A DNA stretch of 64,000 nt from Thalia democratica (GCA_965202585.1 OZ241832.1:49972001-50036000), one strand, 5' to 3'; shown: positions 3,001 to 42,999, counted from the stretch's first letter. Notes: a model not told the origin generated them from the sequence alone. A program made the numbers and translations.

Positions 3001-6000
3001 AAATTTATCTGTTAACATATTGAACAACTTACCCTACTTGAACAAGCAGTTTTTGTAAGCTTTTTAGTATTGATGATCTGTAGCAAGGACACTTCCATAG
3101 TAAAACTGTGATATATACTCAAAAGTTTATCTAGCATAATTTTAGAAATCAAAGTGTTTTTTGTTTAAGTAAATAATTGAGGCAACAAAATTGGAGGTAA
3201 AAATAAATGAGTGCAAATATCCTGGTAAATAACTTTCAACACCACCTAAATTCTAAAGGTAAGTAAGTATACCTACTAAGTTTAATTTTACACAATTTTT
3301 TTTAATTAGATAAAACAACCAGCTGTGCTTTTTAATTTTTCAAAAAACACCATTTTACAGACAAGATTTGCATATTTTTTGTGATTATGACTTCATAGTA
3401 CATCAAAAGCAGTTGAATTGTCTTTAAGTGTATGTCCTTAAGTATAAGCTTTCATTTAAGGTATAAATTTATAAGTCTATGACATGTATAAGTGACTTAA
3501 TTACTATTTATGTCAAAAAAACTAAAATATGTAATTTTTGGGTTCAAATCAGTTTTTTCGGGTGCAAGATTGTTTTTTTTTTGCAATACATATTTATTGT
3601 TATCAAATTCTTCTTAATGGAGCTAAATCACATTCGAATCATATGTTTAAATGTAAATTTTACAATATGACCAAAAATTTGCTGTACTTCCTACCCCTAG
3701 TACTATTTTCAATATTTCCATTTGCACATCTAGCAATTTTAACTATGAAACAGTTTGCTTGTTAACTTATAATGATTATTAGAGTATCCATCGTTTATTC
3801 ATGGTTAAAAAATACTTTAGTTCAAATCCTTTTTGCTAATTTATAGATTTTCAAAATTTTTGGATTTAAGATAGTCAATCTTCAAGAGTTTAATTATAAC
3901 TTTTGTATACAAACCAAAAAAAATAATTCATCAATTTATTATAGCTGTAAAATTGTTTAATCTGCATAAATATATGATAAAATAATATAATTATAAAATA
4001 TTTTCTTAAGTTTAGATAAAAACACTATAAATTGTATTTTTAAACGTAAGAGTAATTTTTTGTACAAATATATCACTATCAAAACTGTTTTATATTTAAT
4101 TTTTTTTTGTAGTAAATAATTTAAACACTATTTGATTTATGAAATACAAAACTAGGTTTTTGTAGGTTTATCGTCAACTTTTAATGGTTGTGCTATTTAA
4201 AACAAACCAGTGTAACTGTCTAAACCAGGGGTCGGCAAACTGCGGCCCGCGGGCCACTTTAAAACTTTTATTCAACTAGTTTAATATACTAATATTTTCG
4301 AAAACACAAAAATAAAATTTTAGTGTTATATTTAAAGGATATTCTATCGCCTAAATTTTTTTGTTCAAAAAAAATGTCTTTAAATATTTTATTTAAAGCA
4401 CATAAAAAAACGGTCCTTTTTGACCTGCCGACCCCTCTAAACCTCTTTTTTTGAAACTGAATAGTCAGCATCTAATAGGTTTTCGAGATTAAAAACAAGT
4501 TAAGCTATTTGACACTACTAATACCATGGTTTCTCAAACTAATTTTTATATTTCCCCACTTAGCAGAAGTTTAACAAATAATTACCCCTTTACTGGTGAT
4601 TTGCCAATTTACTTTTATACCCCCTTACTCGAGATTGCCTCCCGAAAGTCGAGCATCGCCTACTTTGGGGAAGCCTGGTTAATATCAAAGCAACCTTTAA
4701 CAACATTTGTCACTTGGCGTATCCAACATTCTATTTATTTTCACAGGACTCTACTTATTTTTATAGGACATGCTACTTATTTTAATAGAACATTCTACTT
4801 TTTTTCACAGAATATTCTACTCTTTTTCACAGGACGTTCTACTTATTTTCACTGGATATTCTACTTATTTTAACAGGACATTCTACTTATTTTAACAATT
4901 TACGAGGACATTCTACTTATTTTCAAAGGGTAACCTACTTATTTTCACAGGAAATTCTACTTATTTTAACAGGACATTCTACTTATTTTCACAGGGTATT
5001 TTATTTATTTTCACAGGACATTCTATTTATTTTCACAGGACATTCTATTTATTTTCACAGGACATTCTACTTATTTTCAAAGGACATTCTACTTATTTTC
5101 ACAGGACATTCTACTTATTTTCACAGGACATTCTACTTATTTTCACAGGACATTCTACTTATTTTCACAGGACATTCTACTTATTTTCACAGAACATTCT
5201 ACTTATTTTCACAGGACATTCTACTTATTTTAACAGGACATTCTACTTAGTTTAACAGGACATTCTACTTATTTTAACAGGACATTCTACTTATTTTAAC
5301 AGGACATTCTACTTATTTTAACAGGACATTCTACTTATTTTAACAATTTACGAGGACATTCTACTTATTTTCAAAGGGTAACCTACTTATTTTCACAGGA
5401 AATTCTACTTATTTTAACAGGACATTCTACTTATTTTCACAGGGTATTCTATTTATTTTCACAGGACATTCTACTTATTTTCACAGGACATTCTACTTAT
5501 TTTCACAGGACATTCTACTTATTTTAACAGGACATTCTACTTATTTTAACAGGACATTCTACTTATTTTCAAAGGACATTCTACTTATTTTAACAGGACA
5601 TTCTACTTATTTTCACAGGAAATTCTACTTATTTTCACAGGACATTCAACTTATTTTAACAGGACATTCTACTTATTTTCACAGGACATTCTACTTATTT
5701 TCAAAGGACATTCTACTTATTTTAACAGGACATTCTACTTATTTTCACAGGACATTCTACTTATTTTCACAGGACATTCTACTTATTTTAACAGGACATT
5801 CTACTTATTTTAACAGGACATTCTACTTATTTTAACAGGACATTCTACTTATTTTCACAGGACATTCTACTTATTTTCACAGGACATTCTACTTATTTTC
5901 ACAGGACATTCTACTTATTTTCAAAGGACATTCTACTTATTTTAACAGGACATTCTACTTATTTTCACAGGACATTCTACTTATTTTAACAGGACATTCT

Positions 6001-10317: not shown

Positions 10318-12271
10318 AAGGGTTTCCTAAATTCATTTACTAAATCGCCCCCTATTCATAAATAAAAAAAAAAAATTCCCCCCTCCCCTCCCATGATATT
10401 ATACAGTAATTTTTCTCTTGAGTACGCACTTTTGAGTTTTAAAAATTGTGTTTGAAATATAATTTAGACTGGTACTTTTTAGGAATGCACTTTTTGGCTG
10501 TGTTCAAAGTAATTTAAAGGGTTTGAGAAAATAATTTGCAGTTATTTTATTGTAAGCTTGGTAAAGTGTTTTAAAATACTTAATTATTAAAAAGCCTTTT
10601 GTATTCTGTAATAAATTCTGTTTAAATATGAATTGTTTTGAAACTAATGAACCGTTTAGGTTAGTGGTGGACAGATTTTTTAGTAGTAGGTCAGATTTAC
10701 TAAAAAATTATTTATCGTGTCGACTTGTTAAAAAAATGTACTGGGGTGCTGCTTAATTTAAAATCTAACATATAGTAAATTTTAAAAACTCGAGCAAAAT
10801 TGTAATAAAATTATTAGTATTAGTGTAATAAAGTGCTATTGGGAACTGAAAACCAAATTGAAAGCGCATTTCAAAATATCAAGTATCAAAAAAACTAAAT
10901 TTTATTTGTTTTGCACAAGTAGTTTTCAAGTTACTTAGTCGGCCGAAATTTGACTGGACCGTACGTTACCCATCTGAAATCTTAACTGAAACCTGACATT
11001 ATAATAATCTCTGATGTAACGAGCTTCGCACATTTAGTAGTTAATGCTAAGTAACTAGTGGCTCAATATACTTTAATTATTGTGATTATCAAATACTTAT
11101 AATAGCAACTAATTTGCATATACACTACCTAGAAATGGATCAAAATTGCACGAGGTTATTAAACTGCACAAGGTTATTAAATTGCGCGAGGTTATTAAAT
11201 TGCGCGAGGAGACTAAATTGCACGAGAACAAAATTGCACGAGGATAAATTTGCACGAGGGTACAAAACTGCACGAGGGAACAAAATTGCATGAAGACAAT
11301 TTTGCACCATGGGTCAGTTTTGCACGAGTTACATTTTTGCAGTAGAGTAAAAAAAAAACAGAAAAACAAAAATAAAAAAAAGGTACCGACCGAGGGTTTG
11401 GGGTAACAGTGATAAAAAAAATAATGATTAAAAAAAAAAGTTACCGACTGAGGGTTAAGAGTAGAAGTGATAGCAGAAAAAAAAACTAAAAAAAAAGATA
11501 TAAACAAATAAAAATTTAATTTATGCAAAAAAGTCTCCGTGCAAAAGTGTCTTCATGCAATTTTGTGCACTCGTGCAATTTTGTACGTTCGTGAAAATTG
11601 GACAGCTACCCACACTACCTATACTTAAAATATTTAACTACCATGTGAGTACGTGATAATTAAAATACACTTTTTTTAATTTTGTAGTGCAAACTCAAAA
11701 ACAAAATATTGATTTTAAAAAATAACTTACAAAATATAACTTAATTAATAACAATTACTTTTTTATTCTATAGAAAAATTTACTTAAATATGTTTTTTCT
11801 TTTAGTCTAACTAAGTGACTTTTCAAAAAACAATTGGAAATATCAAGAGGTGATAGTTTAAAATAGATAACATAGATTTTTTTAAACAATTTATGATCCC
11901 AAATAGCATATATGCCAGGTTATGAAATGGTGAGAGGGGTTCTATTCATCTATGACTTATGTAGTTGTTAAATGAAAAAAAGATAGGAATAAAAATATAC
12001 ATTTTATTTGAAAATAGTAGTCCTAAGCACTAAATTTTTTTCTGTATTTTACGTAAACAAAATGGACTTTTTTTTAAAGTTCTTATTTCCTTAGGGTCAA
12101 ATATTCAATAACAAGCTACAATTAGTTTAAAAATTACCTACAATTTAGAAAGTAAAAATTTTATAACTGCCTAAAATTTTGAAATCGCCCCCCACCCCTT
12201 TACTAGTTATTGCCCTCGACTTACTAAAATTGCCCCCAGGGGGACGGTACCGCCCACTTTGGGAAATCCTT
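10318..12271 (-). mobile_element. Non-autonomous hAT (Buster/Charlie-like) element, inverted relative to the copy at 48625, with a nested insertion
   Basis: TIRs AAGGGTTTCCTAAA / TTTGGGAAATCCTT. 8-bp TSD GTTTAAAC (10310-10317, 12272-12279) with central TA. Internal segments (10920-11000, 11810-11970, 12180-12271) match the reverse complement of parts of 48625-51363. Confidence 0.85.
11131..11611. mobile_element. Mutator-like non-autonomous element nested in the hAT element
   Basis: Perfect 9-bp TSD ACACTACCT (11122-11130, 11612-11620). Both ends are built of inverted arrays of AAATTGCACGAG-like subrepeats. Confidence 0.75.
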
Positions 12272-14542: not shown

Positions 14543-16628
14543 ATTTTAATAGGGTCAGCCTATTTTAAGTCGATGATTAGTTTTCTTAAAAAAGCTCGTG
14601 TTCTCGCAAGCCGCAGTTTATAGATAAAAGTCTTCCATGGGCCGCAGTTCTTAAAGCAATTTTAATAGCCAATATGAAAAACTTTAATGTATCAAAGTAT
14701 GATAAAATAAGTAACAATAGAGCACTAGTAACAATTAACTAACAAGTTCAGAGCAAAATTGTAGATTTTTTACTACAACCAAAAAAGATTATATTTAATA
14801 AGTATGACTTTTGTTATAATACCTGGCTTGCCGCAATTTCCTAACTTTTAGTTAGGGAGTATCCAGCAGAATAACAAATAAATTGGCTATGAAAAGTGTT
14901 TGATCTTCAAGTACAATAGTATTTTTTTTTGACGAAAAGATAAAACCAGCTGATTCCAAATGTGATATTTAAATAAACGACTCTTAAAAACTTATATTAT
15001 TCTGAAAAATGTTTTTCAGGGCCCAGATCCGGGCTAGTCATTTTCACTTCAAGGATCTTTCTCGCAGGTCGTATGTAGCCCATACCAAGTTTATTTCCTC
15101 GTCTTTTGTTTCATAGTAAAATATAAATTGTAGAACTTTTTATAGTTTAAAAAACATTGTAAGTAAAATAGCCAAGTTTTAGCCATTGGAACAGTGTTTC
15201 TTTTCTGGAACATTTTAATTATTTATGTTTTGCTGATTCTAAAATCTTGAAAACTATCTAAATCTAGCTTTGTACTAGTTTAGTTTATAAAATGTTTAGA
15301 TGTTCAAATATATTTAAGCTTAATGTATTTCCTTTTTTTAATTTTCAAAATAAGCTTTTTTTTTGTGAAATTTATTAATTTTTGTACACTATTTAAATTG
15401 TTGCATTACTTAAACCTTTCTATTTGATCTACTAGCTACCTTAGTTAATTTATTTTTTTTATAATAAAATTTTAATACTTGATATAATGAAATGATATTA
15501 AACAAATACTTTAAGTTTAGAACATGAAAGAATTGAAAATGCAAAATTTTATATATCTCTATTAAAAGTTGTTATAGAAGTTGAACCAATCTTATAGTAA
15601 TCTAACATAAGGATACCTCAGTACAAAAGCCTGCCCTTGTCTAATATTATTAAAGAAGAAACTGATAGTATTCCAGTATACATATAAATAATCTAACATA
15701 TATATGTACAATTATTATAGCAAGATAAATCGCCTAAAGTTTAACACTTTTATAAATTTATAAAGTTTATAGTGTAACATATTAATAAACTACTAAAAAG
15801 TAAACAAGTAGCTAATTTATTTTATATATATATATATTAATATGAATTTAAACTACTCTAGAGTTTGCGTACAACAGTTAATTGGCATGGCACTCTAAAA
15901 AATAGAAATAAAAGACTTCTGTTGTTACTAAGTACTTAAAAGTAGACATTAAAACCATCAAAAAATACACAAATTAAGTCTGTTTATTTTAAGTAAACAT
16001 ACCTCCGTCTTTTGAGGCAAACTTATTTGTTTCTACAAACCTGAAAATATTTTATCTAAAAGAATAACGTTTCTGATAAAAAACTTTGAGTTTTATTACA
16101 AAACTTTAAATGTCAGTAAAGTAAATAATTTAAATTATATTTTTATTTCAAATTATTGGCTTCGACTGCGTAAGTTGTCAGGCTTTTTTTTTTGTATTTT
16201 ATTAAATTTATTTTAGATTCATTATGTTCTAGAGTAAATAAGTATTTTGACAACAATCAAACCTTTATTCATAGAATATTTTTTTCGATAAAAAAACTAA
16301 TTCTTTTTGCTTTATTATTTACCGCCATAATAACTTGATTAATAAAAACCTAGTAAAAACGTTATCAGTTTAGTACATGTTTTAAATAAGAAAACTTTTT
16401 AAAATTTATTTGTTAGAAAATTAACTAGCTACAATACTACAATTTACATGAGTTTATTTAATTCTGAAACTATACACTTATCAACCCAAAATACTAGAAA
16501 GTACCTTAAAAAGATAATCAATCTCCTATGTTTATAAAAAAACATTTTAAAGCATATTACAAAAAAAAACAAGAGTTAGAGCATCAATTAGCATAGCTTC
16601 AAAAGTACTGATGACTAAAACGTTTTAT

Positions 16629-19600
16629 CTAGTTTTTGGGAGTATAGTTGTCGGCACATGAGAATCGTTTGCAGCTAAAAAACTTTTCTATGGTCGCTTC
16701 ATCTACGTTCTCTCTATTCTTTTGATGATTTGCTACAAATGCTTGAAGTACTTCAATCAGACGTTTCTTGAGTTCTCCCGATAAAAGTTCTCCTTTAGCA
16801 TATGCCTAAAATTAATATGAAGATAGATTTATAAATTTTATAAAAAAAAATTAACTAATGACATTACTTTGAAATTATCTACCATGTTTAAAAGTATACA
16901 TCGTTACTAACAGCTTTAATTTTTTCATATTCTTCATCATCGTCTAAGAAGAAATTAAGATATTTAATGCACACATCAACTTCAATATTTCCTCCAAGTT
17001 TTCGGTGCAATTCAACTGTATCTTGGCCTCCACTGAATGCGTACTTATTAATCTGTATAAAATTTTTTAAAATCATGTAAATCACTTATATATCAAAGTA
17101 AATAACTAAGAATACTTTTAAATAAGATCCAGTTAGAATATTACGTTAAACTAAAATAAAATGAAAAATAATTTTTTTGAAGTAATACCTTGGTTTTTAT
17201 TTGTTGGGGAGTATCAGTGAGAAATATTCCGCTGTTTTCATCTGAAGCACTCATTTTAGAGACGGCTCCTTGCAATGCCGGAAAAAATACGGAGTGAATC
17301 AACGCAGGCTTTTTGAATCCTAACGTTGGTGCATAATGCCTTGTCAAGCGGAAGTATGGATCCTAAAATAATTGAAAATAACTAATTAAGTAAAGTTTAG
17401 TTTAGAAACTTTGATGTTATGTTAGTTTGTTCTTCGATGATAGTGCTATAGATAAGCTACTATCATATGCATACACATATACTTTGCTAGATGCATTGAG
17501 CTTTTAAGTAAAATGATTTAATGAAACTAATAAAATTAATAAGTTCTAATTTTTAAAAGGTCTTAATTATAAATAATATTACATTTTTGCCCTTTTTAAA
17601 ATAGTTGATAAGACCTAGATAAGTATTTGTAGAAGCAATAACAAATAAAAATTATTTTTGATACTAAATATGTAAAATTAAAATAGACTCAGTTTTCATT
17701 AAGTAAAATTTTTTTAATTAATAGTTTTATAGCGTTAAACTTGTGTAAACATATTTTAAAACTCATCATAAACCGACTGTTTGAGCAATTGAATATAATT
17801 AAAAACTATCAGTTTTTAATATTACCAAATTAAACTTATATAAATAACAAAATGTTTGGACATTACCTGATCAATAGCGCATGGAATGAGGCATTCCACG
17901 TCTCTACATCCGTTAAAAATGTGTGGAAAACTGGAAGAAAATGAAGGGCAAGCTTGCACTGGTGGAAAACTTACTTGTCCTAGAATAAAATTTATTTATT
18001 TTTAATTAGTGATAAGTATTTTCAAAAATAAAAAAAATAAATATATGTAAAACTATACTTTTATATGTATTGTTCTATAATAAGAGTTTAAACTTTTTAA
18101 TTCAACTACTTAAAAATACGTTGTTTATCTGTTTTAGATTGAATTAAAACTTTTAACTAACCAATATTATTATCTCCCTCGAAGCCGAAGCAGCCTTTTA
18201 CTTGATTTAATGTGACAGCCTTTTTAAACTTGATAATATTCTTAAAGAATTCTTTTCTGTAAGCATGAATTATTTTTATTTAAACTTAAATGTTTATGCT
18301 TACTATTAATTTTTATTTTAATTTAAAATTGTTTTTATAAGCGTTTCAAACATGTTTTAATAAATAGATTTCACTATTTATAAACATTTCCTTTTCAAAT
18401 GCAAAAATTAAATAGTTACTTACCCATGTCCCTCAGTTATATATTCAACATCAGTAAAAATAAAAGTTTTGTCCGGGTCAAATCCGCACGCGATAATATC
18501 TTTGGCGTTTGCGTAAGCTAAATCGGTGTAATCATCAAGGTTCTTGCCGTCTTTGAAGAAAAACTTTTTATCATCAGTCATCTGGATGACTAAAGGCACA
18601 TCAAACACTTTCTGAAGCCATCTGGTATAAAGATAACTAGTAAAAACTTGTTCCGAAACTTGCAGTTTTAGTGTGTTAAGTGTAAAGTTTAGTAGTAACA
18701 TAAAAGGCTGAGTATAATTAAAAGAAAACAACTTAATAAAAAGCTTAAACTATAAAAAGTACGTTTTGAAAATATTATTTCTAAACATTAAAAAACACAT
18801 TTAATAATTGTGTATTAATTAGTGTGCAACTAACTGAGTGAACATGAAATGAACCATATGACCAAGATGCATGGCAGTAGATGAAGGTCCACGTCCAGTG
18901 TACAAATAAAAAGGCTTCCCAGCTATGTAGTTCGTTAACACTTGATCCAGTTCTCTTAATGAAAAATTATGATAAATCAATAAGCTTTTTAAAAAATGTT
19001 AAAACTTGCAAACAGAGACACTTATTAGATATTTGTTTTAGTAATATTAGCAATGCAACACAAATTTTCCGTAGATAACTCAATACTTTTATGGTAAGTT
19101 ATGATCAACTACAATTACAGAAAATAGATACATTATTTTTAGAATAATAAAAAAAATATGTTTTTAAAATTTCTATCCTATAATTTTTATACTGATGTTT
19201 TTAAATTATTTTATGTTTGTTAACTAATAATAAAAACTTATGAGAAAAAAATATTTTTCTTCTAAGAAAGGTATGCATTTTCATAATCTTTTTGTCAAGA
19301 ACTTCTTGAAATTTTTGTAACACATCTTCACTAATTCTTTCTGATCCAAACTTAACTGAAAATTATACTTTTTATTTTTATTCATGCTTATAACTATTAA
19401 GGTTTATTAAAAGTTAAGTCCGGTAGATCATTTTTCTAAAGTTTTTAACTTAAGACGTTCCTCTAATATAAGACCTAATTAATGATGATAAAACAGCAAA
19501 ATATCTGGTTAACGAGTAGTAGTTAGACAAAAAGTTTAATGATATCTAGTAAAGTGATTAAATTGTTTTAACTGTTTAGTTTAAAAAGATTTTTCATTAA

Positions 19601-19814
19601 AAATAACTTTATGAAGACTACCAAAATTCTTAAAAAAAAAATTAAAAGAAAAATCAAGATCAAACTTATATAAATGGTTCAGCTTACCAATGAGTTTTTC
19701 ATAATCAATTCCTTTATTGCTTGATGCCTTTACAGACCACGGATCTACAACATCTTCAGTTTCTGAGTTATTCATTGAAGTGTTTTCCATTTTACGATTA
19801 ATTTCTTCTGCCAT
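16629..19814 (-). CDS. WARS1: Cytoplasmic tryptophanyl-tRNA synthetase, copy 1 (420 aa; open frame with motif substitutions). Exons 19814-19688, 19355-19238, 18954-18835, 18621-18424, 18256-18162, 17979-17867, 17362-17189, 17052-16912, 16805-16629
   Basis: The nine GT-AG exons sum to 1263 nt. Eukaryotic TrpRS signatures are present: [26 protein letters not shown] (HIGH), AIDQDPYFR, KMSAS, YAFSGG, GELKK. No N-terminal WHEP domain. Carries [12 protein letters not shown] and QMTDDKK where sister copies have [12 protein letters not shown] and QMTDDEK. Confidence 0.93.
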
Positions 19815-20427
19815 TTTAGCTTTTATGTAATAATTTTCTGAAAATTTTTAGTGAATAGGATTTAGTATAGAACAAATTTAAATTGTAACTAAGTTTTTAA
19901 GATCCATTCTTTAAAATACCTAATTTATTTTTTTCTGTAAAATTTTTTAACATGAAAAATAATATTAATAATTTCTTTTTAATTTAAATTATAATTGACG
20001 TAATTGACAAGCAAAAAATATGTATGTACCCTAAAAGTTAAAGAAATATTAAAATTTTAAAATAGTTTTAAATATAAGATGTTGCAAAAGTCTTTTTTAA
20101 AGAGGTTTGAAAATATTAAATTTTTAACTTAACATATTATAGACTTATAAAAATGATACTTAAATTTCTCATAACCACTTGTTTAGAACCTAAACTGTAC
20201 TTAAAGTTTTTTTAAAACTTTATTTATCCTGAATTTTATCCTAAGCTGTTACTCGTTGCTCTATTACCTACAAATGATATTAAGAATGCTTGCGTGTAAA
20301 ATAAAAAGTTGTAATTTTCTAATTAAATCCAAGAATCGCTTCATTAAAACTATTTAACAGGATTATGTAATTTGATAACTTTTTATATTACTTATTTTTT
20401 CATTGTTAAAGTAAAAGACTAACTTAC

Positions 20428-22447: not shown

Positions 22448-25400
22448 CTAGTTTTTGGGAATATAGTTGTCGGCACATGAGAATCGTTTGCAGCTAAAAA
22501 ACTTTTCTATGGTCGCTTCATCTACGTTCTCTCTATTCTTTTGATGATTTGCTACAAATGCTTGAAGTACTTCAATCAGACGTTTCTTGAGTTCTCCCGA
22601 TAAAAGTTCTCCTTTAGCATATGCCTAAAATTAGTATGAAGATACAATTATCAAATTTAAATAAAAGTCACTTTAAAATTAAATAGCAAGTTTAAAAATA
22701 TACAACGTTACTGACAGCTTTAATTTTTTCATATTCTTCATCATCGTCTAAGAAGAAATTAAGATATTTAATGCACACATCAACTGCAATATTTCCTCCA
22801 AGTTTTCGGTGCAATTCAACTGTATCTTGGCCTCCACTGAATGCGTACTTATTAATCTGTGTAAAGTTTTTAAAATTCATGTAAATCACTTATACATCAA
22901 AGTAAATAACTAAAAATACTTTTAAATAAGATCCAGTTAGAATATCACGTTAAACTAAAATAAAATGAAAAATAATTTTTTTGAAAAAATACCTTAGTTT
23001 TTATTTGTTGGGGCGTATCAGTGAGAAATATTCCGCTGTTTTCATCTGAAGCACTCATCTTAGAGACGGCTCCTTGCAATGCCGGAAAAAACACGGAGTG
23101 AATCAACGCAGGCTTTTTGAATCCTAACGTTGGTGCATAATGCCTTGCCAAGCGGAAGTATGGATCCTATAATAATTGAAAATAATTAATTAAGTAAAGT
23201 TTAGTTTAGAAACTTTGATGTTATGTTAGTTTGTTCTTCGATTATAGCGCTATGGATCATATGCATACACATATACTTTGCTAGATGCATTGAGCTTTTA
23301 AGGAAAAGGATCTGATTTCACTAATAAAATAAATAAGTTTAAACTTTTAAAAGGCTTTAATTTAAAATACTATTATATTTTTGCCCTTTTTAAAATAGTT
23401 GATAAGATCTAGAAAAGTATTTGTAGAAGCAATAACAAATTAATTTTTTTATGATACTAAATATGTAAAATTAAAATCATACACAGTTTTCATTAAGTAC
23501 ACTTTTTTTCATTAATAGTTTTATAGCGTTAAACTTGGGTAAACATATTTCAAAACTCATCGTAAAACGACTGTTTAAGCAATTGAATGTAAATTAAAAC
23601 TATCAGTTTGTATTATTATTAAATTGAACTAGTATAAATAACAAAATATTTGGACATTACCTGATCGATAGCGCATGGAATGAGGCATTCCACGTCTCTA
23701 CATCCGTTAAAAATGTGTGGAAAACTGGAAGAAAATGAAGGACAAGCTTGTACTGGTGGAAAACTTACTTGTCCTAGAATAAAATTTATTTATTTTTAAT
23801 TAGTGATAAGTATATTTTCGAAAATTAAATAAACAAACATATGTAAAACTATACTTTTATATGTATTGTTCTATAATAAGAGTTTAAAATTTTTAATTCA
23901 ACTACTTAAAAATACGTTGTTTATCTGTTTTAGATTGAATTTAAATTTTTAACTAACCAATATTATTATCTCCTTCGAAGCCGAAGCAGCCTTTAACTTG
24001 ATTTAATGTGACAGCTTTTTTAAACTTGATAATATTCTTAAAGAATTCTTTTCTGTAAGCATGAATTATTTTTATTTAAACTTAAATGTTTATGCTTACT
24101 ATTAACTTTTATTTTAATTTAAAATTGTTTTTATAAGCGTTTCAAACATGTTTTAATAAATAGATTTCACTTTTTATAAACGTTTCTGTTTTAAATGCAA
24201 AAATTAAATAGCTACTTACCCATGTCCCTCAGTTATATATTCAACATCAGTAAAAATAAATGTTTTGTCCGGGTCGAATCCGCAAGCAATAATATCTTTG
24301 GCGTTTTCGTAAGCTAAATCGGTGTAATCATCAAGGTTCTTGCCGTCTTTGAAGAAAAACTTTTCATCATCAGTCATCTGGATGACTAAAGCCACATCAA
24401 ACACTTTCTGAAGCCATCTGGTATAAAAATAACTAGTAAAAACTTGTTCCGAAACTTGCAGTTTTAGTGTGTTAAGTGTAAAATTTAGTAGTAACATAAA
24501 TATCTGAGTATAATTAAAAGCTTAAACTATAAAAAGTAATTTTTGAAAATATTCTTTCTAAACATTAAAAAACACATCTAATAATTGTGTATTAATAACT
24601 GTGCCACTAACTGAGTGAACATGAAAGGAACCATATGACCAAGATGCATGGCAGTAGATGAAGGTCCACGTCCAGTGTACAAATAAAAAGGCTTCCCAGC
24701 TATGTAGTTCGTCAACACTTGATCCAATTCTCTTAATGAAAAATTATGATAAATCAATAAGCTTTTTAAAAGATGTCAAAACTTGCAAACAGAGACACTT
24801 ATTAGATATTTGTTAGTAATATTAGCAATGCAAGACAGATTTTCCGTAGATAACTCAATTACTTTTATGGTAATTTATGGTAGTCCAACTACAACTACAG
24901 AAAATAGATACATTATTTTTAGAATAATTAAAAAAAAAGATGTTTTTGAAACTTCTATTTGCATTAATTTTTATACTGATGTTTTTAAATTATTTTGTTT
25001 ATGTTAACTAATAATAAAAACCTATGAGAAAAAAATATTTTTCTTCTAAGAAAGGTATGCATTTTCATATTCTTTTTGTCAAGAACTTCTTGAAATTTTT
25101 GTAACACATCTTCACTGATTCTTTCTGATCCAAACTTAACTGCAAATTATACTTGTTATTTTTATTCATGCTTATAACTATTAAGGTTTATTAAAAGTTA
25201 AGTACGGTAGATCATTTTTCTAAAGTTTTTAACTTAAGACGTTCCTATAATATAAGACCTAATTAATGATGATAAAAAAGCAAAAAATCTGGTTAACGAG
25301 TAGTAGTTAGACAAAAAGTTTAGTGATATCTAGTAAAGTGATTAAATTGTTTTAACTGTTTAGTTTAAAAAGATTTTTCATTAAAAATAACTTTATGAAG

Positions 25401-25601
25401 ACTACCAAAATTCTTAAAAAAAAAAAATTGAAAAGAAAAATCAAGATCAAACTTTTATAAATGGTTCAGCTTACCAATGAGTTTTTCATAATCAATTCCT
25501 TTATTGCTTGATGCCTTTACAGACCACGGATCTACAACATCTTCATTTTCTGAGTTATTTATTGAAGTGTTTTCCATTTTACGAGTAACTTCTTCTGCCA
25601 T
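22448..25601 (-). CDS. WARS1: Tryptophanyl-tRNA synthetase, copy 2 (apparently intact, 9 exons)
   Basis: All nine exons are in frame with GT-AG borders. [28 protein letters not shown] and SGELKK are intact. It is the only copy with canonical ENAKDI. Private changes: DVAL, RLARH, GNIAV. Confidence 0.93.
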
Positions 25602-28226: not shown

Positions 28227-31200
28227 CTAGTTTTTGGGAATATAGTTGTCGGCACATGAGAATCGTTTGCAGCTAAAAAACTTTTCTATGGTCGCTTCAT
28301 CTACGTTCTCTCTATTCTTTTGATGATTTGCTACAAATGCTTGAAGTACTTCAATCAGACGTTTCTTGAGTTCTTCCGATAAAAGTTCTCCTTTAGCATA
28401 TGCCTAAAATTAATATGAAGATAAAATTATCAAATTTAAATAAAAGTTACTTTAAAATTTAATACCAAGTTTGAAAATATATAACGTTACTGACAGCTTT
28501 AATTTTTTCATATTCTTCATCATCGTCTAAGAAGAAATTAAGATATTTAATGCACACATCAACTTCAATATTTCCTCCAAGTTTTCGGTGCAATTCAACT
28601 GTATCTTGGCCTCCACTGAATGCGTACTTACTAATCTGTATAAAATTTTTAAAAATCATGTAAATCACTTATATATCAAAGTAAATAACTAAGAATATTT
28701 TTAAATAAGATCCAATTAGATTATTAAGTTAAACTAAAATAAAATGAAAGATAATTTTTTTGAAGTAATACCTTGGTTTTTATTTGTTGGGGCGTATCAG
28801 TGAGAAATATTCCGCTGTTTTCATCTGAAGCACTCATCTTAGAGACGGCTCCTTGCAATGCCGGAAAAAATACGGAGTGAATCAACGCAGGCTTTTTGAA
28901 TCCTAACGTTGGTGCATAATGCCTTGTCAAGCGGAAGTATGGATCCTATAACAATTGTAAATATTTAATTAAGTACAGTTTAATTTAGAAACTTTAATTT
29001 CATGTTAGTTTTTTCTTTGACAATAGCTTTATGGATAAAGTATTTTCATGTACATACACATATACTTTGCAAGAAGCCTTGAGCTTTTAAGGAAAATAAT
29101 CTGATTTAACTAATAAAATAAGTTCTAATTTTTAAAAGGCGCTAACTAAAAATACTACTACATTTTTGCCCTTTTAAAAATAGTTGATAAGATCTAGAAA
29201 TGTATTTGTAGAAGCAATAACAAATTAAAACTATTTTAGATACTAAATATGTAAAATCAAAATCATACTCAGTTTTCATTAAGTACAATTTTTTTCATTA
29301 ATAGTTTTATAGCGTTAAATTTGTGTAAACATATTTCAAAACTCATCGTAAACCGACTGTTTAAGCAATTGAATGTAAATTAAAACTATCAGTTTGTATT
29401 ATTATTAAATTAAACTAGTATAAATAACAAAGTATTTGGACATTACCTGATCGATAGCGCATGGAATGAGGCATTCCACGTCTCTACATCCGTTAAAAAT
29501 GTGTGGAAAACTGGAAGAAAATGAAGGGCAAGCTTGTACTGGTGGAAAGCTTACTTGTCCTAGAATAAAATTTATATACTTTTATTTAGTGATAAGTATT
29601 TATTCCTAAATTAAATAAATATATGTAAAACTATACTTTTATATGTATTGTTTTATAATAAGAATTTAAACTTTATAATTCAACTACTTGAAAATACGTT
29701 GTTTATCTGTTTTAAATTGAATTAAAACTTTTAACTAACCAATATTATTATCTCCTTCGAAGCCGAAACAGCCTTTTACTTGATTTAGTGTGACAGCTTT
29801 TTTAAACTTGATAATGTTCTTGAAGAATTCTTTTCTGTAAACATGAAATATTTTTTATAAACTTAAACGCTTATGCTTACTATTAGTTTATATTTTAATT
29901 TAACATTATTATTATAAGCGTTTCAACCATGTTTTAATAAATAGATTTCACTTTTTATAAAAATTTCTGAGTTCAAATTAAAAAAATTGAATATCCACTT
30001 ACCCATGTCCCTCAGTTATATATTCAACATCAGTGAAAATAAAAGTTTTGTCCGGGTCAAATCCGCAAGCGATAATATCTTTGGCGTTTGCGTAAGCTAA
30101 ATCGGTGTAATCATCAAGGTTCTTGCCGTCTTTGAAGAAAAACTTTTCATCGTCAGTCATCTGTATGACTAACGGCACATCAAACACTTTCTGAAGCCAT
30201 CTGGTATAAAGATAACTAGTAAAAACTTGTTCCGAAACTTGCAGTTTTAGTGTGTTAGGTGTAAAGTTTAGTAGTAACATAAAAGGCTGAGTATAATTAA
30301 AAGAAAACAACTTAATAAAAAGCTTAAACTATAAAAAGTACGTTTTAAAATTACTATTTCTAAACATTACAAACACATTAAAATATTGTGTATTAATAAC
30401 TGTGCCACTAACTGAGTGAACATGAAAGGAACCATATGACCAAGATGCATGGCAGTAGATGAAGGTCCACGTCCAGTGTACAAATAAAACGGCTTCCCAG
30501 CTATGTAGTTCGTCAACACTTGATCCAATTCTCTGGATGGAAAATTATGATAAATCAATAAGCTTTTTAAATGATGTCAAAACTTGCAAACAGAGACACT
30601 TATTAGATATTTGTTTTAGTAATATTAGCAATGCAACACAGATTTTCCGTAGATAACTCAATACTTTTATGGTAAGTTATGATCAACTACAATTACGGAA
30701 AACAGATACATTATTTTTAGAATAATTAAAAAAAAGACGTTTTTAAAATTTCTATTTGCATTAATTTTTATACTGATGTTTTTGAATTATTTTGTATTTG
30801 TTAACTAATAATAAAAACCTATGAGAAAAAATATTTTTCTTCTAAGAAAGGTATGCATTTTCATATTCCTTTTGTCAAGAACTTCTTGAAATTTTTGTAA
30901 CACATCTTCACTAATTCTTTCTGATCCAAACTTAACTGAAAATTATACTTTTTATATTTATCCATGCTTATAACTATTAAGGTTTATTAAAAGTTAAGTC
31001 CGGTAGATCATTTTTCTAAAGTTTTTAACTTAAGACGTTCCTATAATATAAGACCTAATTAATGATGATAAAACAGCAAAATATCTGGTTAACAAGGAGT
31101 AGTTAGACATAAAGTTTAGTGATATCTAGTAAAGTGATTAAATTGTTTTAACTGTTTAGTTTAGAAAGATTTTTCATTAAAAATAACTTTATGAAGACTA

Positions 31201-31395
31201 CCAAAATTCTTAAAAAAAAAATTGAAAAGAAAAATCAAGATCAAACTTATATAAATGGTTTAGCTTACCAATGAGTTTTTCATAATCAATTCCTTTATTG
31301 CTTGATGCCTTTACAGACCATGGATCTACAACATCTTCAGTTTCTGAGTTATTTATTGAAGTGTTTTCCATTTTACGAGTAATTTCTTCTGCCAT
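28227..31395 (-). pseudogene. WARS1: Tryptophanyl-tRNA synthetase, copy 3; 1-bp deletion in exon 2 predicts a frameshift
   Basis: The A-run at 30826-30831 has 6 nt versus 7 in copies 1, 2 and 5. Exon 2 then ends in phase 1 and exon 3 reads (E)NWIKC-stop. Also SGELKK to SEELKK (28374-28376) and INKY to ISKY. A homopolymer sequencing error cannot be excluded. Confidence 0.7.
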
Positions 31396-34037: not shown

Positions 34038-37000
34038 CTAGTTTTTGGGAATATAGTTGTCGGCACATGAGAATCGTTTGCAGCTAAAAAACTTTTCTAT
34101 GGTCGCTTCATCTACGTTCTCTCTATTCTTTTGATGATTTGCTACAAATGCTTGAAGTACTTCAATCAGACGTTTCTTGAGTTCTTCCGATAAAAGTTCT
34201 CCTTTAGCATATGCCTAAAATTAATATGAAGATAAAATTATCAAATTTAAATAAAAGTTACTTTAAAATTTAATACCAAGTTTGAAAATATATAACGTTA
34301 CTAACAGCTTTAATTTTTTCATATTCTTCATCATCGTCTAAGAAGAAATTAAGATATTTAATGCACACATCAACTTCAATATTTCCTCCAAGTTTTCGGT
34401 GCAATTCAACTGTATCTTGGCCTCCACTGAATGCGTACTTACTAATCTGTATAAAATTTTTAAAAATCATGTAAATCACTTATATATCAAAGTAAATAAC
34501 TAAGAATATTTTTAAATAAGATCCAATTAGATTATTAAGTTAAACTAAAATAAAATGAAAGATAATTTTTTTGAAGTAATACCTTGGTTTTTATTTGTTG
34601 GGGCGTATCAGTGAGAAATATTCCGCTGTTTTCATCTGAAGCACTCATCTTAGAGACGGCTCCTTGCAATGCCGGAAAAAATACGGAGTGAATCAACGCA
34701 GGCTTTTTGAATCCTAACGTTGGTGCATAATGCCTTGTCAAGCGGAAGTATGGATCCTATAACAATTGTAAATATTTAATTAAGTACAGTTTAATTTAGA
34801 AACTTTAATTTCATGTTAGTTTTTTCTTTGACAATAGCTTTATGGATAAAGTATTTTCATGTACATACACATATACTTTGCAAGAAGCCTTGAGCTTTTA
34901 AGGAAAATAATCTGATTTAACTAATAAAATAAGTTCTAATTTTTAAAAGGCGCTAACTAAAAATACTACTACATTTTTGCCCTTTTAAAAATAGTTGATA
35001 AGATCTAGAAATGTATTTGTAGAAGCAATAACAAATTAAAACTATTTTTGATACTAAATATGTAAAATCAAAATCATACTCAGTTTTCATTAAGTACAAT
35101 TTTTTTCATTAATAGTTTTATAGCGTTAAATTTGTGTAAACATATTTCAAAACTCATCGTAAACCGACTGTTTAAGCAATTGAATGTAAATTAAAACTAT
35201 CAGTTTGTATTATTATTAAATTAAACTAGTATAAATAACAAAGTATTTGGACATTACCTGATCGATAGCGCATGGAATGAGGCATTCCACGTCTCTACAT
35301 CCGTTAAAAATGTGTGGAAAACTGGAAGAAAATGAAGGGCAAGCTTGTACTGGTGGAAAGCTTACTTGTCCTAGAATAAAATTTATATACTTTTATTTAG
35401 TGATAAGTATTTATTCCTAAATTAAATAAATATATGTAAAACTATACTTTTATATGTATTGTTTTATAATAAGAATTTAAACTTTATAATTCAACTACTT
35501 GAAAATACGTTGTTTATCTGTTTTAAATTGAATTAAAACTTTTAACTAACCAATATTATTATCTCCTTCGAAGCCGAAACAGCCTTTTACTTGATTTAGT
35601 GTGACAGCTTTTTTAAACTTGATAATGTTCTTGAAGAATTCTTTTCTGTAAACATGAAATATTTTTTATAAACTTAAACGCTTATGCTTACTATTAGTTT
35701 ATATTTTAATTTAACATTATTATTATAAGCGTTTCAACCATGTTTTAATAAATAGATTTCACTTTTTATAAAAATTTCTGAGTTCAAATTAAAAAAATTG
35801 AATATCCACTTACCCATGTCCCTCAGTTATATATTCAACATCAGTGAAAATAAAAGTTTTGTCCGGGTCAAATCCGCAAGCGATAATATCTTTGGCGTTT
35901 GCGTAAGCTAAATCGGTGTAATCATCAAGGTTCTTGCCGTCTTTGAAGAAAAACTTTTCATCGTCAGTCATCTGTATGACTAACGGCACATCAAACACTT
36001 TCTGAAGCCATCTGGTATAAAGATAACTAGTAAAAACTTGTTCCGAAACTTGCAGTTTTAGTGTGTTAGGTGTAAAGTTTAGTAGTAACATAAAAGGCTG
36101 AGTATAATTAAAAGAAAACAACTTAATAAAAAGCTTAAACTATAAAAAGTACGTTTTAAAATTACTATTTCTAAACATTACAAACACATTAAAATATTGT
36201 GTATTAATAACTGTGCCACTAACTGAGTGAACATGAAAGGAACCATATGACCAAGATGCATGGCAGTAGATGAAGGTCCACGTCCAGTGTACAAATAAAA
36301 CGGCTTCCCAGCTATGTAGTTCGTCAACACTTGATCCAATTCTCTGGATGGAAAATTATGATAAATCAATAAGCTTTTTAAATGATGTCAAAACTTGCAA
36401 ACAGAGACACTTATTAGATATTTGTTTTAGTAATATTAGCAATGCAACACAGATTTTCCGTAGATAACTCAATACTTTTATGGTAAGTTATGATCAACTA
36501 CAATTACGGAAAACAGATACATTATTTTTAGAATAATTAAAAAAAAGACGTTTTTAAAATTTCTATTTGCATTAATTTTTATACTGATGTTTTTGAATTA
36601 TTTTGTATTTGTTAACTAATAATAAAAACCTATGAGAAAAAATATTTTTCTTCTAAGAAAGGTATGCATTTTCATATTCCTTTTGTCAAGAACTTCTTGA
36701 AATTTTTGTAACACATCTTCACTAATTCTTTCTGATCCAAACTTAACTGAAAATTATACTTTTTATATTTATCCATGCTTATAACTATTAAGGTTTATTA
36801 AAAGTTAAGTCCGGTAGATCATTTTTCTAAAGTTTTTAACTTAAGACGTTCCTATAATATAAGACCTAATTAATGATGATAAAACAGCAAAATATCTGGT
36901 TAACAAGGAGTAGTTAGACATAAAGTTTAGTGATATCTAGTAAAGTGATTAAATTGTTTTAACTGTTTAGTTTAGAAAGATTTTTCATTAAAAATAACTT

Positions 37001-37206
37001 TATGAAGACTACCAAAATTCTTAAAAAAAAAATTGAAAAGAAAAATCAAGATCAAACTTATATAAATGGTTTAGCTAACCAATGAGTTTTTCATAATCAA
37101 TTCCTTTATTGCTTGATGCCTTTACAGACCATGGATCTACAACATCTTCAGTTTCTGAGTTATTTATTGAAGTGTTTTCCATTTTACGAGTAATTTCTTC
37201 TGCCAT
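34038..37206 (-). pseudogene. WARS1: Tryptophanyl-tRNA synthetase, copy 4; near-identical to copy 3 with the same frameshift
   Basis: Offset exactly 5811 bp from copy 3 at both start and stop. 6-A run at 36637-36642, same SEELKK and ISKY. Only scattered SNPs differ (e.g. exon 1 donor GTTAGC vs GTAAGC). Confidence 0.7.
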
Positions 37207-39846: not shown

Positions 39847-42800
39847 CTAGTTTTTGGGAATATAGTTGTCGGCACATGAGAATCGTTTGCAGCTAAAAAA
39901 CTTTTCTATGGTCGCTTCATCTACGTTCTCTCTATTCTTTTGATGATTTGCTACAAATGCTTGAAGTACTTCAATCAGACGTTTCTTGAGTTCTCCCGAT
40001 AAAAGTTCTCCTTTAGCATATGCCTAAAATTAATATGAAGATAAAATTATCAAATTTAAATAAAAGTTACTTTAAAATTTAATACCAAGTTTGAAAATAT
40101 ATAACGTTACTAACAGCTTTAATTTTTTCATATTCTTCATCATCGTCTAAGAAGAAATTAAGATATTTAATGCACACATCAACTTCAATATTTCCTCCAA
40201 GTTTTCGGTGCAATTCAACTGTATCTTGGCCTCCACTGAATGCGTACTTATTAATCTGTATAAAATTTTTAAAAATCATGTAAATCACTTATATATCAAA
40301 GTAAATAACTAAGAATACTTTTAAATAAGATCAAATTAGATTATTAAGTTAAACTAAAATAAAATAAAAAATAATTTTTTTGAAAAAATACCTTAGTTTT
40401 TATTTGTTGGGGCGTATCAGTGAGAAATATTCCGCTGTTTTCATCTGAAGCACTCATCTTAGAGACGGCTCCTTGCAATGCCGGAAAAAACACGGAGTGA
40501 ATCAACGCAGGCTTTTTGAATCCTAACGTTGGTGCATAATGTCTTGTCAAGCGGAAGTATGGATCCTATAATAATTGAAAATAACTAATTAAGTAAAGTT
40601 TAATTTAGAAACTTTAATGTTATGTTAGTTTGTTCTTCGATTATAGCGCTATGGATCATATGCATACACATATACTTTGCAAGAAGCATTGAGCTTTTAA
40701 GGAAAATAATGTGATTTAACTAATAAAATAAGTTCTAATTTTTAAAAGGCTCTAACTAAAAATACTACTACATTTTTGCCCTTTTTAAAATAGTTGATAA
40801 GATCTAGAAAAGTATTTGTAGAAGCAATAACAAATTATTTTTTTTTTTGATACTAAATATGTAAAATAAAATCGTACTCAGTTTTCATTAAATACAATAT
40901 TTTTCATTAATAGTTTTATAGCGTTAAATTTGGGTAAACATATTTCAAAACTCATCATAAACCGAATGTTTAAGCAATTGAATGTAAATTAAAACTATCA
41001 GTTTGTATTATTATTAAATTGAACTAGTATAAATAACAAAATGCTTTGACATTACCTGATCGATAGCGCATGGAATGAGACATTCCACGTCTCTACATCC
41101 GTTAAAAATGTGTGGAAAACTGGAAGAAAATGAAGGGCAAGCTTGCACTGGTGGAAAACTTACTTGTCCTAGAATAAAATTTATTTATTTTTATTTAGTG
41201 ATAAATTTTTATTCCAAAATTAAATAAATATATGTAAAACTATACTTTTATATGTATTGTTCTATAATAAGAATTTGAACTTTTTAATTCAACTACTTGA
41301 AAATACGTTGTTTATCTGTTTTAGATTGAATTAAAACTTTTAATTAACCAATATTATTATCTCCTTCGAAGCCGAAACAGCCTTTTACTTGATTTAATGT
41401 AACAGCCTTTTTAAACTTGATAATATTCTTGAAGAATTCTTTTCTGTGAGCATAAATTATTTTATATAAACTTAAATGTTTATGCTTACTGTTAGTTTTT
41501 ATTTTAAATTAACATTACTTTTATAAGCGTTTCAAACGTGTTTTAATAATTAGATTTCACTTTTTATAAAATTTTTTGTTTCAAATTAAAAAAATTGAAT
41601 ATCCATTACCCATGTCCCTCAGTTATATATTCAACATCAGTGAAAATAAAAGTTTTGTCCGGGTCAAATCCGCAAGCGATAATATCTTTGGCGTTTGCGT
41701 AAGCTAAATCGGTGTAATCATCAAGGTTCTTGCCGTCCTTGAAGAAAAATTTTTCATCATCAGTCATCTGTATGACTAACGGCACATCAAACACTTTCTG
41801 AAGCCATCTGGTATAAAAATAGCTAGTAAAAACTTGTTCCGAAAATTGCAGTTTTAGTGTGTTAAGTGTAAAGTTTAGTAGTAACAAAAATATCTGAGTA
41901 TAATTAAAAGAAAACAACTTAATAAAAAGCTTAAACTATAAAAAGTAATTTTTGAAAATATTATTTCTAAACATTAAAAACACATTAAATTATTGTGTAT
42001 TAATTACTGTGCCACTAACTGAGTGAACATGAAAGGAACCATATGACCAAGATGCATAGCAGTAGATGAAGGTCCACGTCCAGTGTACAAATAAAACGGC
42101 TTCCCAGCTATGTAGTTCATTAACACTTGATCCAATTCTCTGGATGGAAAATTATGATAAATCAATAAGCTTTTTATAAAGTCAAAACTTGCACATAGAT
42201 ACTTATTAGATATTTCATTTAATAATATTAGCAACGCAACACAGATTTTCCGTAGATAACTCTATACTTTTATAGAAGTTTATGATAGTTCAACTACAAA
42301 TATAGAAAATAGATACATTATTTTTAGAATAATTAAAAAAAAAGACGTTTTTAAAATTTCTATTTGCATTAATTTTTATACTGATGTTTTTAAACTAATT
42401 TGTATTTGTTAACTAATAATAAAAACCTATGAGAAAAAAATATTTTTCTTCTAAGAAAGGTATGCATTTTCATATTCTTTTCGTCTAGAACTTCTTGAAA
42501 TTTTTCTAACACATCTTCACTAATTCTTTCTGATCCAAACTTAACTGCAAATTATACTTTTTATTTTTATCCATGCTTATACTTATTAAGGTTTATTAAA
42601 AGTTAAGTCCCGTAGATCATTTTTCTAAAGTTTTTAACTTAAGACGTTCCTATAATATAAGACCTAATTAATGATGATAAAACAGCAAAATATCTGGTTA
42701 ACGAGTAGTAATTAGACAGAAAGTTTAATGATATCTAGTAAAGTGATTAAATTGTTTTAACTGTTTACAAAGATTTTTTATTAAAAATAACTTTATGAAG

Positions 42801-42999
42801 ACTACCAAAATTCTTAAAAATAAAATTGAAAAGAAAAATCAAGATCAAACTTATATAAATGGTTCAGCTTACCAATGAGTTTTTCATAATCAATTCCTTT
42901 ATTGCTTGATGCCTTTACAGACCACGGATCTACAACATCTTCAGTTTCTGAGTTATTTATTGAAGTGTTTTCCATTTTACGAGTAATTTCTTCTGCCAT
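39847..42999 (-). CDS. WARS1: Tryptophanyl-tRNA synthetase, copy 5 (apparently intact, 9 exons)
   Basis: All exons are in frame, with the 7-A run at 42434-42440. [42 protein letters not shown] and SGELKK are all intact. Confidence 0.93.

Follow-up and report, generated by a model that had tools for sequence, protein, structure and literature searches.

When a TrpRS gene keeps a fully open reading frame and encodes a protein altered at three conserved positions, is it still an enzyme gene, a pseudogene at its start, or a protein put to another use? This question is raised by a 64,000-nt stretch of Thalia democratica DNA (GCA_965202585.1 OZ241832.1:49972001-50036000; hereafter the window), which has a G+C content of ~25% in a genome of 801 Mb and parts of which are present in marine metagenome runs. 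Five tandem repeat units of ~5.8 kb extend from 16549 to ~45700, each with one nine-exon TrpRS gene on the minus strand. The gene of the edge unit, the 3'-most of the five, is copy 1 (A1). The first-pass annotation had described it as a full-length frame with three altered conserved residues, including the Trp-binding glutamate, and had taken it to be either a very young pseudogene or a catalytically dead pseudo-enzyme. We find this to be the right pair of options, but the weight given to the intact frame was misplaced, as roughly every second copy drifting neutrally with so few changes would still have an open frame (see below).

A1 was delineated by tblastn and a splice model (Table 1). All of its introns are GT..AG, and its 1263-nt CDS encodes 420 residues and a stop codon with no internal stop or frameshift, as had been annotated, so that A1 does not show the broken frame by which pseudogenes are recognized. 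The product is a full-length TrpRS homologue: a search of the PDB with exon 4 recovers 19 distinct TrpRS sequences (best E=1e-20), and the whole protein is alignable with 31 full-length homologues as a eukaryotic/archaeal-type TrpRS of class Ic (Pfam PF00579). Human cytoplasmic TrpRS (WARS1; 2QUH, 2QUI, 1R6T, 2AKE, and others) has the same eukaryotic/archaeal-type class I fold, and A1 exon 4 corresponds to its residues 182-242 (E=1e-18). Both proteins carry the HLGH and KMSAS signatures as well as Y159, Q194, K200, Q284, and Q313, so that five of the six Trp-pocket residues are retained in A1 and the sixth, at position 199, is Lys. The two differ in that A1, at 420 residues, has no WHEP domain, in that it has Lys for Glu199, His for Pro176, and Lys for Arg141, and in that the human gene is single whereas A1 belongs to a genomic family of at least 14.

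Table 1. Positions in the window of the A1 gene, its private replacements, and the neighbouring TrpRS copies.
Feature	Position	Strand	Description
TrpRS copy A1	16629..19814	minus	9 exons, 420-aa open frame (tblastn and splice model)
A1 exons 1-3	19814-19688, 19355-19238, 18954-18835	minus	tblastn and splice model
A1 exons 4-6	18621-18424, 18256-18162, 17979-17867	minus	tblastn and splice model
A1 exons 7-9	17362-17189, 17052-16912, 16805-16629	minus	tblastn and splice model
A1 3' flank	16549..16628	minus	similarity to other repeat units stops ~80 nt past the stop codon (array boundary)
Codon at human Glu199	18567..18569	minus	AAA (Lys); GAA in all other copies
Codon at human Pro176	18849..18851	minus	CAT (His); CCT in all other copies; altered base 18850
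Exon 2 end and intron-2 donor	19232..19240	minus	G-to-A at 19238
A1-private N66I	19285..19287	minus	in variable N-terminal extension
A1-private T6N	19797-19799	minus	
A1-private I14M	19773-19775	minus	
TrpRS copy A2	22448..25601	minus	frame intact; E199, P176, R141 kept; Pro190Ala
TrpRS copy A3	28227..31395	minus	1-bp deletion in exon 2 (30821-30839), frame shifted
TrpRS copy A4	34038..37206	minus	same frameshift as A3 (36632-36650)
TrpRS copy A5	39847..42999	minus	intact; consensus at all invariant positions

The flanks of A1 differ in how much they share with the other repeat units. Upstream, the 300 nt before the ATG are conserved with the sister copies. Downstream, beyond the point at which similarity stops, the AATAAA found at +124 in the sisters is missing, and a different AATAAA lies at +166. 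We also noted a TTTTCAG ~24 nt before the ATG, conserved in A1-A5 (in A1, within 19815-19845 of the window), which looks like a splice acceptor, either of a 5'-UTR intron or of a trans-splice site.

Six amino acid replacements are private to A1: T6N, I14M, N66I, R82K, P117H, and E140K. The last three fall at human Arg141, Pro176, and Glu199, respectively, and are the changes reported earlier; the assembly bears them out at the annotated codons, with AAA, CAT, and AAA in A1 at Glu199, Pro176, and Arg141 where the other copies have GAA, CCT, and AGA. At the Glu199 codon the altered base is 18569 (plus-strand T, C elsewhere), the Arg141 codon is split between 19239-19238 and 18954, and the Pro176 position lies three residues past the HLGH signature. 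E, P, and R are kept at these columns in 12 of 12 other array copies and in a related gene on chromosome 9. Residue 1 of A1 exon 4 corresponds to Trp182 in full-length chains of human TrpRS, placing the new Lys at human position 199 and confirming that the altered glutamate is the one that binds the α-amino group of Trp (PMC2275098, PMC1538984, PMC12093056).

Conservation at these positions is nearly absolute. When 1.84 billion cluster representatives were scanned with exon 4, 150 homologues emerged. They comprise 151 aligned stretches, in which position 199 is E in 150 and K in none; the remaining one has D and comes from a double-length protein, of which it represents the second, degenerate module. 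Among 31 full-length homologues that are mutually less than 50% identical, position 199 is E in 31/31, while positions 141 and 176 are R and P, each in 30/30. With the same exon as query, the nearest fragments in a collection of 5.8 billion proteins are 85-95% identical and all have E, none K. These fragments come from ENA metagenomes and all run into the intron, hence they are genomic, and a transcriptome of this species seems to be missing from the collection.

The structural role of the lost residue suggests what its replacement would do. Glu199 hydrogen-bonds the α-amino group of bound Trp, and the adjoining Lys200 binds the Trp carboxylate (PMC2275098 and PMC1538984, both crystallographic; PMC12093056). 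Lys at 199 would therefore present a second positive charge to the substrate ammonium group. Because Glu199 contacts the substrate directly and is near-invariant, it is a sound inference that the charge reversal would cripple Trp activation, leaving it lost or severely weakened, in a protein whose other motifs are intact. Our literature search found no mutagenesis of Glu199 and gave nothing usable on the roles of Arg141 and Pro176.

The Arg141 substitution has a second predicted consequence, since base 19238 is the last of exon 2. The donor of intron 2 reads TAA|GTTTTT instead of TAG|GTTTTT, in agreement with the altered AA|GT context annotated earlier, and is the only one among 112 donors in 14 family genes with neither a G at -1 nor a G at +5. 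By the rules of U1 recognition, a donor that lacks both should splice more weakly, and so the A1 intron-2 donor should be weakened. Retention of the intron leads to a stop after 11 further codons.

We asked whether the A1 bases have support in read data, using Logan contigs placed on 16400-20000. The matching runs came from two organisms and several marine metagenomes and were all DNA-like (introns covered, without splice joints), with no RNA run among them. Letters private to A1 introns, T at each of 17068, 17757, and 19000, occur at the depth of a single copy in runs that represent two samples and two studies, so the A1 locus is real. At the exonic private sites 17255, 19286, and 19773, contigs from three runs carry only the letter of the 12 paralogues, and 18569, 18850, and 19238 are spanned by no contig, so that the A1 letters there are neither supported nor excluded. 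These exonic blanks arise because Logan contigs, which here are 45-230 nt long and end at paralogue differences, drop minority branches by design. Taken at face value, the exonic contigs agree with a view in which the three bases are not fixed in the species and represent either a rare haplotype carried by the individual that was sequenced or, in a collapsed repeat, an assembly or consensus error, and 13 near-identical copies are indeed hard to assemble. We nevertheless regard this view as very unlikely: the private intron letters recur across samples and studies, three substitution errors within 670 bp are improbable in a chromosome-scale assembly, and a rare allele would still represent a decaying copy.

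A1 belongs to a large family. A whole-genome search found at least 14 TrpRS copies, and contig depth in run X1, ~570-650 in exons compared with ~40 at A1-private intron letters, fits roughly 14 copies. Eight intact copies of 420 aa (B1-B8; C8:48782000-48822900) form another tandem array 1.2 Mb from the window and share 87-89% DNA identity with A5. A long-intron TrpRS gene on chromosome 9 (C9:9808500-9817500) has the same exon structure and phases as the array genes, from which it is separated by a dS of 0.7-0.8, and is probably the original gene. Two further loci are relics of earlier copies: an old pseudogene (L005, C8:46914500-46920500; C8:46.915-46.919 Mb) with stops in nearly every exon and 73-81% DNA identity, and a lone exon-1 fragment with two stops (L007:2829-2915; C8:50224000-50229500), 0.2 Mb from the array. 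The spacers between array copies contain no Rfam family and no ORF of at least 50 aa that we linked to a known gene; outside the array, the ORFs at 4526-4873 and 11109-11528 have no Pfam match.

The neighbours of A1 are themselves damaged. It had been stated that the sister copies retain the consensus, which holds at the three positions discussed here but not beyond them. A3 and A4 share a deletion in exon 2 that shortens a plus-strand run of seven A to six, and A2 carries Pro190Ala (codon 24390-24392, in FDVPLVIQ), at a position that is P in 31/31 distant homologues; A2 may thus be a second copy of the array that is losing function. A3 and A4 share 99.9% identity, and the repeat units that carry them 99.8% over 6.85 kb. 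Their common frameshift reflects either very recent duplication of an already frameshifted copy or an artefact of homopolymer or duplication assembly. A4 also has GTTAGC in place of GTAAGC at its intron-1 donor. A5 is the only clean copy of this array. With A3 and A4 frameshifted and an invariant proline of A2 changed to alanine, the array around A1 is decaying.

To compare selection on A1 and its sisters, we used private differences together with pairwise Nei-Gojobori estimates. Pairwise dN/dS across the family is 0.05-0.18 (about 0.1), with dS of 0.07-0.09 among the A copies, which indicates that the family as a whole is maintained by selection. In A1, private changes amount to 0.8% of exon positions versus 2.8% of intron positions, and in A1 and sister copies alike the exons are 3-4 times slower than the introns. 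Constraint thus acted on A1 through most of the time since its separation, and if it was lost completely, this must have happened recently. Its private exonic changes number 9-10, including six replacements and three silent changes, and in this 6:3 ratio A1 is not significantly different from the other copies (19:22; p=0.46). A1 stands apart in the placement of its replacements: the 42 positions (10%) that we class as near-invariant took three of the six in A1, compared with 1 of 19 in the other copies (Fisher p=0.03; p=0.015 without A2). This suggests that A1 lacks the constraint that the other copies show and has escaped catalytic constraint.

These comparisons bear on whether A1 could still be a working TrpRS that tolerates the three substitutions, perhaps at the price of a higher Km for Trp, and adds to the dosage of the family. 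An open frame, a full set of signature motifs, the conservative nature of the R-to-K change, and exons that evolve as slowly relative to introns as those of the sisters are what such a gene should display. It would, however, be a TrpRS with a Lys seen at 199 in none of the 151 stretches and with residues at 141 and 176 that none of 30 homologues has, altered at a glutamate that touches the substrate ammonium group directly, and functional copies almost never change positions of this kind (the 1 in 19 above). We therefore judge continued catalytic function of A1 to be improbable.

Nor is the open frame informative. Under a mutation spectrum derived from the introns, 6.8% of neutral changes create a stop, so that 49-53% of copies with 9-10 changes would remain open, and A1 would be expected to lack a stop about as often as not even under complete neutrality. 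We therefore favour, with a probability of about 0.5, a reading in which A1 is a real and separate member of the TrpRS family that has very recently lost its canonical job and in which pseudogenisation is beginning. According to this reading, Lys199 beside Lys200 would repel the ammonium group of the substrate, abolishing or greatly reducing Trp activation; a share of A1 transcripts would keep intron 2 and run into the early stop; the open 420-aa frame would survive only because too few mutations have accumulated so far; and the loss would be tolerated because at least 10 intact copies back it up. The weakened splice donor, the loss of the shared 3' flank including the site of the sisters' poly(A) signal, and the lesions in neighbouring copies all favour decay. 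Against it stand the conserved 5' flank, with nothing that points to silence, and the distribution of replacements along the protein.

That distribution is the argument for an alternative in which A1 is a retained, non-catalytic or re-aimed subunit, its fold, dimer contacts, and tRNA anticodon-binding domain being kept by selection. Such a protein would form asymmetric dimers with active copies or, with no charging activity of its own, would serve to bind Trp, a Trp-like ligand, or tRNA-Trp. Neutral drift of the whole gene predicts that 10% of replacements fall on near-invariant positions, and the three of six observed in the catalytic region have a probability of 0.017 under this expectation; a rough Poisson likelihood places release restricted to the invariant positions ~21-fold above neutrality of the whole gene. 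Both values are post hoc and derive from nine substitutions in a case that was picked for these very hits. In addition, codons 1-140 and 141-420 have N:S of 6:0 and 0:3 (Fisher p=0.012), with the silent changes confined to codons 214-293, so that the last two thirds of the protein acquired no replacement while silent changes and the 2.8% private intron changes accrued; the N-terminal third, though, is also the most changed part of the other copies (11/19 replacements). The remaining pocket and signature residues are all kept, which the alternative would lead one to expect. On the other hand, the same set of mutations weakens a splice donor, which is odd for a gene in use, the 3' flank is lost, and the neighbours are decaying. 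The sole evidence for a retained non-catalytic protein is the clustering of substitutions, which hints at it weakly, and on balance we hold retention to be a doubtful alternative to early pseudogenisation. A specific version, in which A1 has been converted, is in our view unlikely: selection would have removed or re-aimed the amino-acid site and kept the dimer contacts and tRNA-binding domain, making A1 a dead partner in asymmetric dimers or a binder of a Trp-like compound with no free amino group. In a converted A1, Lys at 199 beside Lys200 would create a doubly positive site for the α-group.

We also considered gene conversion as the source of the three changes. A single tract from a degenerate donor was set aside, as intron 3, which lies between two of the changes, has 1 private change in 181 nt; the known pseudogene L005 was set aside as donor because it keeps E and R.

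As TrpRS is dimeric, the earlier suggestion that A1 could modulate active copies in heterodimers is in principle plausible, yet we infer that the effect would be weak. The subunits of such a heterodimer are 97-98% identical. In TrpRS each tRNA spans both subunits (PMC1538984, PMC2275098) and only one site is active at a time (PMC2275098), so the loss of one site should leave a dimer able to charge tRNA. A dimer of A1 and a working copy should thus charge at the good site, by way of the unchanged C-terminal domain of A1. The same geometry makes a dead partner structurally tolerable, which fits a retained A1 subunit. Since A1 is 1 of at least 11 intact-frame copies, any dominant-negative effect should be small, and a subunit of this abundance with one dead site is expected to alter total charging little, which argues against a gene retained for that purpose.

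A1 resembles the unprocessed pseudogenes that tandem arrays generate by birth-and-death evolution in being a redundant duplicate with changes at otherwise kept positions, a splice site predicted to be weak, and a 3' flank no longer shared with its sisters. The L005 pseudogene, in which almost all exons contain stops, differs from A1, whose frame is free of stops and shifts and whose private exonic changes number only 9-10. Synthetases that form asymmetric pseudo-dimers, with one of the two sites dead, are also known, the double-length TyrRS of Leishmania major being an example. Like a putative A1 heterodimer, such proteins are class Ic dimers in which one site lacks substrate-binding residues and its partner works; they differ in that a single chain contains both halves and in that the dead state is conserved, whereas the dead site of an A1 heterodimer would come from a separate, recently mutated gene. 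Non-catalytic synthetase paralogues used for binding or regulation, such as HisZ, the HisRS-like domain of GCN2, and insect SLIMP, parallel the pseudo-enzyme reading of A1 in keeping a synthetase fold after the loss of aminoacylation, but they are old, diverged, and conserved across lineages, whereas A1 is six residues from working sisters and has no known orthologue. Our literature search retrieved no relevant work on amplified TrpRS genes or on pseudo-enzymes among synthetases.

The double-length protein encountered in the conservation scan (P0002) is a 793-aa TrpRS on a metagenomic JGI/IMG contig of 2936 nt. Its first module keeps HMGH and QLTDDEK and has lost KMSAS, while in the second AIDQ and KMSSS are kept, HxGH is degenerate, and Tyr159 and Glu199 are replaced by His and Asp, respectively. 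The two modules may complement each other in a fused pseudo-dimer, comparable to the Leishmania major TyrRS. The existence of a double TrpRS with degenerate modules counts in favour of the idea that a non-catalytic TrpRS subunit such as A1 can be retained.

On its own, a duplicate disabled within a large tandem family is what birth-and-death evolution ordinarily produces. It is unusual for an animal to have at least 14 copies of a synthetase gene, mostly under purifying selection, and A1, A2, and the A3/A4 pair illustrate how a TrpRS array sheds its members. Being six residues from working sisters, three of them invariant, A1 also provides a natural mutant set for the contributions of Glu199, Pro176, and Arg141, and the activity of a TrpRS heterodimer with one dead site bears on half-of-the-sites catalysis. 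Should the site-restricted pattern hold in more haplotypes, A1 would offer an unusually early snapshot of pseudo-enzyme formation, and if conversion of A1 were true, this would be a pseudo-enzyme only a few substitutions from its birth, inside a 14-copy synthetase family.
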